A stretch of DNA of 64,000 nt from Bugula neritina (lineage: Eukaryota; Animalia; Bryozoa): NCBI GenBank assembly GCA_964035545.1, contig OZ037767.1:21964628-22028627 (forward strand), given 5' to 3'. This document shows, piece after piece, positions 304 to 47,650 of this stretch (positions within the stretch are counted from its first letter, which is position 1; each line of letters opens with the position of its first letter). Position numbers and translations under genes: made by a program. Under the pieces are notes generated by a model. That model was not told the origin of the DNA, ran no database searches, and saw nothing but the letters and a program-made list of their open reading frames with translations.

Positions 304-1950
304 GTTTGCCATGTTAGAGGGTCATTGTTACTCCATTTGAAATCTACTCCGTTTGCAAAGCTATTCATTCCTATCCAGTAATTAGTAGATCTACAATACA
401 TTTATATAGTGTAATATAATACTAGAACATAATACACTACATTATAATAAAACATAGCACAGTATAATATGAAGTTATGTAATGTAATACGCTGTAATAT
501 AATATAATATTGGCATATTATATACCTAGTAATATAATATGAAGCTATATAATGTAGGGTATTGTATTGTGGCAAGTGCCAGCAAGTTGTATGTATTGTG
601 GCAAGTGCCAGCAAGTTGTATGTATTGTGGCAAGTGCCAGCAAGTTGTATGTGTGGTGGCAGGTATAGCTTGTATACAATGAATTGTAAGAACTACTACG
701 ACTCACGAGTTGAGGTGCTTCACCAGGTAATTCCACAATGACTTCTCATTTTCAGGAAGATGGATGAGCTGTGAACTAGGTCCGTAGAGGTCAGTGCAAG
801 CTGCTGTCAGTCTTTCGGTGTCCATGTCTACGTGTATCGCAGGTGTGTTGACTGCTATGCACCTGGCAATGTTTTGGTAAATGTCCAGCTCTGCACCCAG
901 CCTTGTGCATTCTGGAATATACAGAAGTATACAATTTTCAATTGTTGTAAAAACCATTTTGATTTAAAGTGCAGAATACTTCAAACACAAATATTGGAAG
1001 TTATCAAATGACAGCTATATTATTACCTTCCTTAGTTGAAAAATAATTTTTAGATAACAGTCAAAATTTCTAATTAGATAATCAAGTACCGATTGATTAG
1101 AAACCTCTCACTATAAAAGATGGGTCATTTCAATTAATTTAGTTCAAACTCGAAATTTCCAGTTTTTAGATATTTTTCACAATTTAGCTGCTAATTTATA
1201 CAAATTTTTTCCCAAAACTAAAAAAAATATCAAGAAGTACAAGGTTTTTTTAATTTCGCTTAATTTGTTTGTTTGTTTATTTCATCAATATATACATAAA
1301 GTAAAAAAAATACAAGGGATCACCCAAAGGAGGTAATGATGAGGCCCAATGGTGCGCCATAGCATGATTTTTCTAATTATTTAGCTATTTTGGATTTTCG
1401 GACCATCACGGTTTATTTGTGACGGTCCGCAATTCTAAATTAACTAAATTATTAGGAAAAAAACATAGAAAATCAATTAAAATTAAAAGGAACCTTGGTT
1501 ATATAGTTGTATTTTTTAATTTTGATTAGTTTAGAGCAAAAACCCAAATAAATTAACAGCTTAATCGTAGAGATTAGCTAAAAACTGAAATTTCAAGTGT
1601 GAAATAGATTAAGTGAAATGACCCGGATGTGTGTAGTTGTAGTGAGATGATTTAGTAAACCACAACATAAATGAGGGACGTAATTCCCCCCAGCTAACTG
1701 AATGAGAAAGACGTATAGAGGCCACATAACTCCATCAGTCAGTGTATGAAATAAACTAACAGACGACTGAAGTGGTCTAGTTGCCACTTACCAAGATCAG
1801 ACTCTTGAGTGCCATTTCCTGGACAGTTCAGCCCATCACCAAAAGGCTCGGGATTGGTACAAGTTCTGGTTCGTCTATATAGCATACTTGTATCTGAGCA
1901 GGCGGAGTTACAACTAGCCCAGTCACTCCATAAGCTCCACCCACCATCAA
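304..1950 (-). CDS. TSP1 + C-type lectin unit 7 (continues off the window)
   Basis: Exons 1792-1950, 707-911, 304-390; close paralogues of the unit 6 exons, with identical 159-nt and 87-nt exon sizes. Confidence 0.85.

Positions 1951-47650: not shown

Follow-up and report, generated by a model that had tools for sequence, protein, structure and literature searches.

The locus examined here raises the question of whether the long run of exons on its minus strand belongs to one gene and, if so, whether the predicted protein would recognize glycans, act as a receptor or serve a structural role. The window, meaning the whole 64,000-nucleotide stretch of Bugula neritina contig OZ037767.1 that was analyzed, has ~33% GC and comes from a genome of 216 Mb in 321 contigs.

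Extent and reality of the gene

The predicted mosaic gene lies on the minus strand and comprises 74 exons encoding 3,842 residues (about 3,840-3,850) with zero internal stops. Sixty of these exons, from 47650 down to 304, are within the window and splice without an internal stop, as the initial annotation had claimed for some 60 phase-compatible exons, and the splices are GT-AG with one GC-AG donor at 44766. The remaining 14 exons lie to the left of the window (loci L001 and L002), and the gene overruns its left end by 10.3 kb. The model was built for the minus strand with a splice and codon dynamic programme followed by correction by hand, and because the programme imposed phase compatibility, the phase fit alone is no evidence for the model. 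Two first-pass exons were dropped, namely 45396-45299, which gives a split stop (the true exon is 44872-44766), and 34117-33995 (the true exons are 34422-34287 and 33994-33934). The first modeled exon opens in mid-codon and the ATG exon is therefore expected further upstream, although the coding/splice programme found no convincing candidate for it upstream of 47650.

With a median of 520 nt the introns are short, and the only long one, of 3.9 kb in CTLD6, owes its length to a multicopy transposon. This 3.5-kb element (window 3210-6717) has terminal inverted repeats of ~875 bp that are 98% complementary, and its arms have at least 40 matches elsewhere in the genome at 96-100% identity, which therefore points to a recently active long-TIR/foldback DNA transposon family. 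Another intron holds a LINE-type reverse transcriptase fragment (39783-40709, minus strand; PF00078, E 4e-10); the related contig described below does not contain this stretch (gap 40704-39596), which is therefore an insertion difference. The intron between the WSC-like exons contains 101 copies of (TGG)n (23070-23373) that could pass wrongly for a poly-Thr exon.

At its 5' side the gene is bounded by a divergently oriented, plus-strand PTB/PID-domain gene (~58740-62400; PF14719, E 1e-4), which we take to resemble LDLRAP1. The 3' boundary is a convergent PRXL2B-like (AhpC-TSA_2) gene. The end of its last coding exon lies ~11.46 kb left of the window, leaving a gap of ~1-1.1 kb, partly multicopy repeat, after the last TSP1 of the mosaic gene:

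L002:7336-7542 and L002:4423-4569, plus strand: exons of the PRXL2B-like gene

An apparent exon 11.5 kb left of the window was rejected, as it is the reverse strand of the last PRXL2B-like exon. Broken, GC-rich stretches resembling LTR retrotransposons, with protease, RT and integrase-like reading frames, lie ~19-22.5, 35-42, 53-57 and 68-74 kb left of the window (L002-L009).

Four independent checks, one of them the short introns described above, indicate, at the level of sequence, that the mosaic gene is real and more than an artifact of the programme. Between modules, 31 of 33 junctions are phase 1 (binomial p 4e-13 against one third, with module labels that are our own), whereas 26 of the 40 junctions inside modules are phase 2, and phase-1 module borders combined with mostly phase-2 inner junctions are the signature of exon-shuffled extracellular modules. 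Indeed, as in class 1-1 exon-shuffled mosaics, the modules are flanked by phase-1 introns and are of the secreted, Cys-rich type. A 21-kb metagenome contig labeled Bugula neritina, here termed the sibling, carries 31 consecutive colinear exons, which run from the first modeled exon of the gene to the third exon of PTX3. All 31 have equal lengths and intact splice sites, including the GC donor, and no stops, with a pN/pS of 0.20, and the gene is, on this evidence, under purifying selection; the sibling contigs end at 26.1 kb, such that the cross-genome comparison covers the half of the gene above ~26 kb. A protein 95% identical to one exon was found on JGI contigs named with AY690838, an accession that also occurs in the paper on the mitochondrial genome of Bugula neritina (PMC2678162). 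Of the JGI scans beyond the sibling, one was empty and the others gave unrelated TSP1 proteins. The PTX3 exons (26132-27612) diverge faster in amino acids from the sibling than does the rest of the gene, with up to 18.5 non-synonymous against 12.5 synonymous changes in exon 26278, which may reflect alignment or haplotype noise near the contig end.

More distantly, the marine metagenome contig L017 carries seven homologous exons whose order and boundaries match those of the gene (53% identity; dN 0.42, dS 1.9). Five further exon-sized clusters, at 46-61% identity, bring the total for the exon of the unnamed domain to six. Homologues were found only in marine metagenome contigs and in Bugula-labeled contigs.

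Modules of the head and of the CTLD-TSP1 array

The protein would have ~30 modules, of which a head of ~1,870 aa has pentraxin, kringle, F-type and LamG folds. All database searches were run exon by exon, with lower sensitivity for domains that are split across exons. The head and the region that joins it to the array are composed as follows:

47483-47650, minus strand: exon 2, a hydrophobic signal-peptide-like stretch and an acidic, MopE-like DGxDNDCDG motif (PF11617, E 4.8e-5, below the Pfam cut-off; kept in L029)
42952-45966, minus strand: PTX1, pentraxin/LamG3 fold, six exons including the GC-AG donor at 44766 (SAP-like pentraxin in PDB, E 0.006; PF13385, E 0.01)
42193-42572, minus strand: kringle 1, two exons, six Cys (PF00051, E 5.8e-8 and 0.002; PDB kringles)
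37156-41682, minus strand: PTX2, pentraxin-like at the motif level, five exons (Cys motifs align with PTX1; kept in L029)
35440-35715, minus strand: six-Cys module with kringle-like spacing, one exon, putative fold (coding by comparison with L029)
33431-35063, minus strand: F-type lectin or F5/8 type C fold, four exons (PF00754/PF22633, E 0.03-0.07; motif scan)
32338-33080, minus strand: divergent TSP1, two exons, six Cys (phmmer to the array TSP1s, E 4e-4)
30527-31915, minus strand: LamG3-like domain, three exons (PF13385, E 0.018, on the homologous exon L017:739-915; ~50% identical in L017)
28050-30100, minus strand: unnamed domain of ~240 aa, four exons (six homologous exon clusters)
28014-28049, minus strand: possible 36-nt exon extension with RRRKR-S, a furin-type site, maybe intronic
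24973-27612, minus strand: PTX3, pentraxin/LamG3 fold without the pentraxin disulfide, four exons (PF13385, E 0.05)
23988-24343, minus strand: Thr/Pro stalk and then a WSC-like start (18-bp repeat, 11.5 copies, 24042-24248)
22688-23704, minus strand: WSC-like four-Cys module (motif scan, motif only)
21972-22175, minus strand: six-Cys exon of unassigned type, putative 3' boundary (runs into a 29-bp tandem repeat)

Kringle 1, TSP1 and CTLD are firmly supported by sequence. For PTX1, PTX3, the LamG domain and the F-type fold the matches are weak yet agree with one another, and PTX2, the WSC-like module and the second kringle were assigned from motifs only. Kringle 1, proposed in the initial annotation and borne out by the Pfam and PDB matches, has the six-Cys triple loop together with CRNP and WCY. 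The second, kringle-like module has fared less well; its Cys spacing fits a kringle by eye, but every kringle similarity search was negative, with no Pfam, PDB, Atlas or word-index homologue match and no match to a small kringle profile, and a single-sequence fold failed to give a structure (pLDDT 35). The module is coding, with 11 synonymous against two non-synonymous changes relative to L029. Of the three pentraxins first read here, PTX1 retains both pentraxin disulfide Cys and PTX3 is homologous to it (E 8e-6), which weakly supports the fold in these two, but PTX2, with no Pfam or PDB match exon by exon, is a pentraxin by its motifs only. The F-type and LamG folds are likewise retained on weak matches, as is the MopE-like motif on a match that falls short of the Pfam threshold. 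The WSC-like assignment loses ground, as the module has four Cys against the eight-Cys pattern, no PF01822 or other Pfam match, and no place among the at least 150 WSC matches listed for the genome. The unnamed domain holds up as such, with no Pfam or PDB match, PDB profile searches included, and a search with two of its exons found no paralogue in the genome; it presumably resembles a widespread uncharacterized invertebrate extracellular domain.

The basic motif noted earlier as RRKR is present and is kept in the Bugula sibling together with the two in-phase donors that flank it, but these rank second-lowest and lowest against the other 72 donors of the gene. Furthermore, in two types of distant homologue (L017/L020-type) the exon ends at a strong donor and has no basic cluster. 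It is possible that RRKR is a Bugula feature.

The remainder of the gene is an array of alternating modules supported by Pfam, PDB and profile tests:

304-21053, minus strand: CTLD-TSP1 array, continuing leftward through L001 and L002
19269-21053, minus strand: CTLD1, with TSP1 at 18895-19059
17312-18586, minus strand: CTLD2, with TSP1 at 15982-16149
13944-15306, minus strand: CTLD3, with TSP1 at 13176-13349
10450-12409, minus strand: CTLD4, with TSP1 at 10011-10172
8959-9572, minus strand: CTLD5, with TSP1 at 7568-7726
2329-7047, minus strand: CTLD6, with TSP1 at 1792-1950, followed by CTLD7 from 911

In full it has 10 CTLDs and 11 TSP1s, as nine CTLD-TSP1 pairs followed by CTLD10 and two further TSP1s. 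The array described at first as seven or more TSP1-CTLD units thus does continue, and the module order stands, but there is no leading TSP1, the first CTLD being preceded by a Cys-rich exon. Nine of the ten CTLDs pass a leave-one-out profile test, and CTLD3 and CTLD5 are shortened. The array TSP1s have Pfam matches, WxxW and RxR; the last two have six Cys, whereas the nine inner ones have four, are without the terminal Cys pair and continue straight into the next CTLD. The CTLD copies are 12-28% identical, except for CTLD6 and CTLD7 at 56%, and even in this closest pair synonymous sites are saturated in the CTLD exons, for which reason the array looks old. The earlier description of it as expanding is therefore unsupported, and recent expansion is rejected on the same saturation and on the divergence of the copies. 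The TSP1 exons of the CTLD6/CTLD7 pair have diverged less (dS 0.2), suggesting that sequence has been exchanged locally.

At the end of the array, the last TSP1 has a phase-1 donor of average strength; if this donor is not used, the frame runs on for four codons to a stop and gains an odd seventh Cys. Candidate terminal exons beyond it all have negative or near-zero coding scores, and a word-index homologue search with the last TSP1 returned nothing. A moderately hydrophobic reading frame lies ~250 nt downstream of the donor. The model contains no transmembrane segment (best 19-residue hydropathy 1.8), and an adhesion-GPCR or PKD-type C-terminus was rejected, as there are no more coding exons before the convergent gene. 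The membrane form that had been suggested is thus less likely, with only ~1 kb in the left flank between the predicted model and that gene.

Scaffold, recognition protein or receptor

The canonical ligand motifs are missing from every lectin-type module tested. A motif scan found neither EPN nor QPD plus WND in any of the ten CTLDs, with only QPS in CTLD10. Some invertebrate CTLDs whose motifs are variant nonetheless bind sugar. The GQEQD calcium loop is absent from all three pentraxin-fold domains, and the pentraxin signature HxCx[ST]Wx[ST] occurs, in variant form, in PTX1 only. For F-type lectins, the fucose (His-Arg-Asp-Arg) and cation motifs have been defined (PMC5712786); the F-type domain has no match to HX24RXDX4(R/K), even with a spacing of 20-30 residues allowed, and its cation motif h2DGx takes the form ALDGD, with Leu at the second position instead of the listed V/A/I. 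The composition is acidic (Asp+Glu 12.9%, Lys+Arg 6.1%) and there are 29 N-glycosylation sequons, concentrated toward the C-terminus. Because of the missing motifs, the predicted sequence favors an extracellular scaffold over pattern recognition. Hence the carbohydrate/pattern-recognition reading of the initial annotation is weakened, although the lectin-type folds on which it was based are there, and its alternative of a lineage-specific secreted or membrane scaffold is retained as lineage-restricted and extracellular (hydrophobic N-terminus, Cys-rich modules, sequons and stalk), with the membrane form less likely.

The likeliest competitor is a soluble pattern-recognition or agglutinating protein of the coelomic fluid or feeding mucus, whose many lectin folds would together hold glycans of microbes or food particles through avidity. 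Pentraxin, F-type and C-type domains are classic recognition folds (PMC5712786), the genome holds at least 100 CTLD matches, and the excess of amino-acid change in the PTX3 exons would fit such a role, but the loss of canonical motifs in all of the tested modules and a single-copy pattern unlike that of the clustered lectin arrays of this genome (no paralogue for two exons searched, low pN/pS) make it unlikely. A membrane-tethered, mannose-receptor-like protein with its anchor in an unrecognized last exon would account for ten CTLDs that mostly have no sugar motifs, for the PLA2R and mannose-receptor relatives that are the best PDB matches of CTLD10, and for the ordinary phase-1 donor and hydrophobic frame after the last TSP1. 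However, given the scores of the terminal-exon candidates, the ~1.1 kb, part of it multicopy repeat, that is left before the PRXL2B-like gene, and no visible cytoplasmic tail, we regard it as quite unlikely.

The last alternative concerns the gene itself, as a head gene and an array gene, or more than two genes, could lie side by side with their apparent unity arising from fitting phases. The dynamic programme forces phase compatibility and the sibling contigs end before the array, both of which leave room for a split, but no second signal peptide, stop-bearing terminal exon or promoter-sized gap is seen, and none of the introns from PTX3 to CTLD1 is longer than ~1 kb, their splice sites being ordinary. 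We therefore consider a split very improbable and the model to represent, with high likelihood, a single gene that joins head and array.

With somewhat better than even confidence, we propose that this single-copy bryozoan gene encodes what is probably a secreted multivalent matrix scaffold, a glycoprotein of ~420 kDa. The gene would have arisen through exon shuffling, from extracellular modules of phase 1. In its product, jelly-roll and kringle modules would make up the N-terminal head, followed by a Thr/Pro hinge, likely O-glycosylated, and by a rod of CTLD-TSP1 units with ten CTLDs, capped by two complete TSP1s. Since the inner TSP1s have four Cys and run into the next CTLD, we infer that each of them may form a single stiff unit with the CTLD that follows. 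The lectin folds would act as protein-, proteoglycan- or mineral-binding spacers, and the scaffold, located in the body wall, the cuticle, the skeleton or the attachment layer, would cross-link proteins, proteoglycans or chitin and mineral surfaces through numerous non-canonical sites of low affinity. An optional furin-type cleavage could part the head from the rod. Precedents for such a role come from the mineralized-matrix proteomes of brachiopods and annelids, which share F5/8C, ConA-like/LamG, TSP1 and C-type lectin domains (PMC13425148), and from flatworm adhesive proteins, which are giant mosaics with CTLD or TSP1 (PMC6410801).

Relation to known mosaics and significance

In the mannose-receptor family (MRC1, Endo180, PLA2R and DEC-205; group VI), to which the best PDB matches of CTLD10 belong, most CTLDs have no sugar sites. 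Chains of this family have at least eight CTLDs (PMC514892), a feature shared by the ten found here, but they begin with ricin-type (ricin B) Cys-rich and fibronectin type II domains, for which the mosaic exons scanned have no Pfam match, and they are type I transmembrane proteins with a cytoplasmic tail, whereas the mosaic model, with a tentative last exon, has no transmembrane segment. In addition, the CTLDs of the mosaic, unlike those of the family, alternate with TSP1 and follow the 1,870-aa pentraxin/kringle/F-type/LamG head. Similar in kind are Mlig-ap1 and ap2 of Macrostomum, also very large secreted mosaics that use CTLD or TSP1 (PMC6410801), and the shell and tube matrix proteins of lophotrochozoans, with F5/8C, LamG, TSP1 and CTLD in common (PMC13425148). 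The likeness to these adhesive and matrix mosaics is at the level of domains; the order differs, and the Bugula protein has no recognized vWD/C8/TIL, EGF or Lys/Arg-rich region. Chimeric F-type lectins in which the FTLD is joined to pentraxin or CTLD, as in the mosaic, or to CCP have been described (PMC5712786), but the mosaic has a single FTLD with no fucose motif among its many modules. By its predicted sequence, the mosaic belongs neither to the mannose-receptor family nor to the true C-type, F-type or CRP-type lectins.

The architecture appears to be undescribed, in agreement with the earlier statement that it matches no named protein. Literature searches for the domain combination turned up no paper that describes it, and among 1.84 billion representatives there was no long protein with the unnamed-domain exon, only exon-sized fragments and three low-complexity matches; an annotated bryozoan orthologue is possible. 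As a kind of protein, exon-shuffled extracellular mosaics of invertebrates are well known. The genome itself holds many other CTLD, TSP1 and WSC arrays. These include interleaved CTLD and WSC matches at C1:5.11-5.17 Mb (G000), about ten near-identical 9-kb CTLD gene repeats at C2:29.93-30.04 Mb, a multi-CTLD cluster at C9:5.12-5.23 Mb and a WSC array at C4:23.06-23.12 Mb. Because of these other arrays, and because invertebrate genomes commonly contain novel domain mosaics, we consider the gene interesting rather than startling.

Nevertheless, we found no bryozoan skeletal or adhesive proteome in the literature, and a conserved single-copy giant with the lophotrochozoan matrix domain set is therefore a concrete candidate for work on the skeleton, cuticle or fouling adhesion of Bugula. 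It also poses two structural puzzles, namely the four-Cys TSP1 joined to a CTLD and the unnamed domain. On a bolder view, which we hold to be unlikely, the four-Cys TSP1 and the CTLD after it fold together into a new composite repeat, from which a rigid rod is built, and the protein, its unnamed 240-aa domain included, is a conserved, bryozoan-specific structural part of the calcified body wall or of the attachment glue; if so, it would provide a molecular marker of skeleton building in bryozoans.
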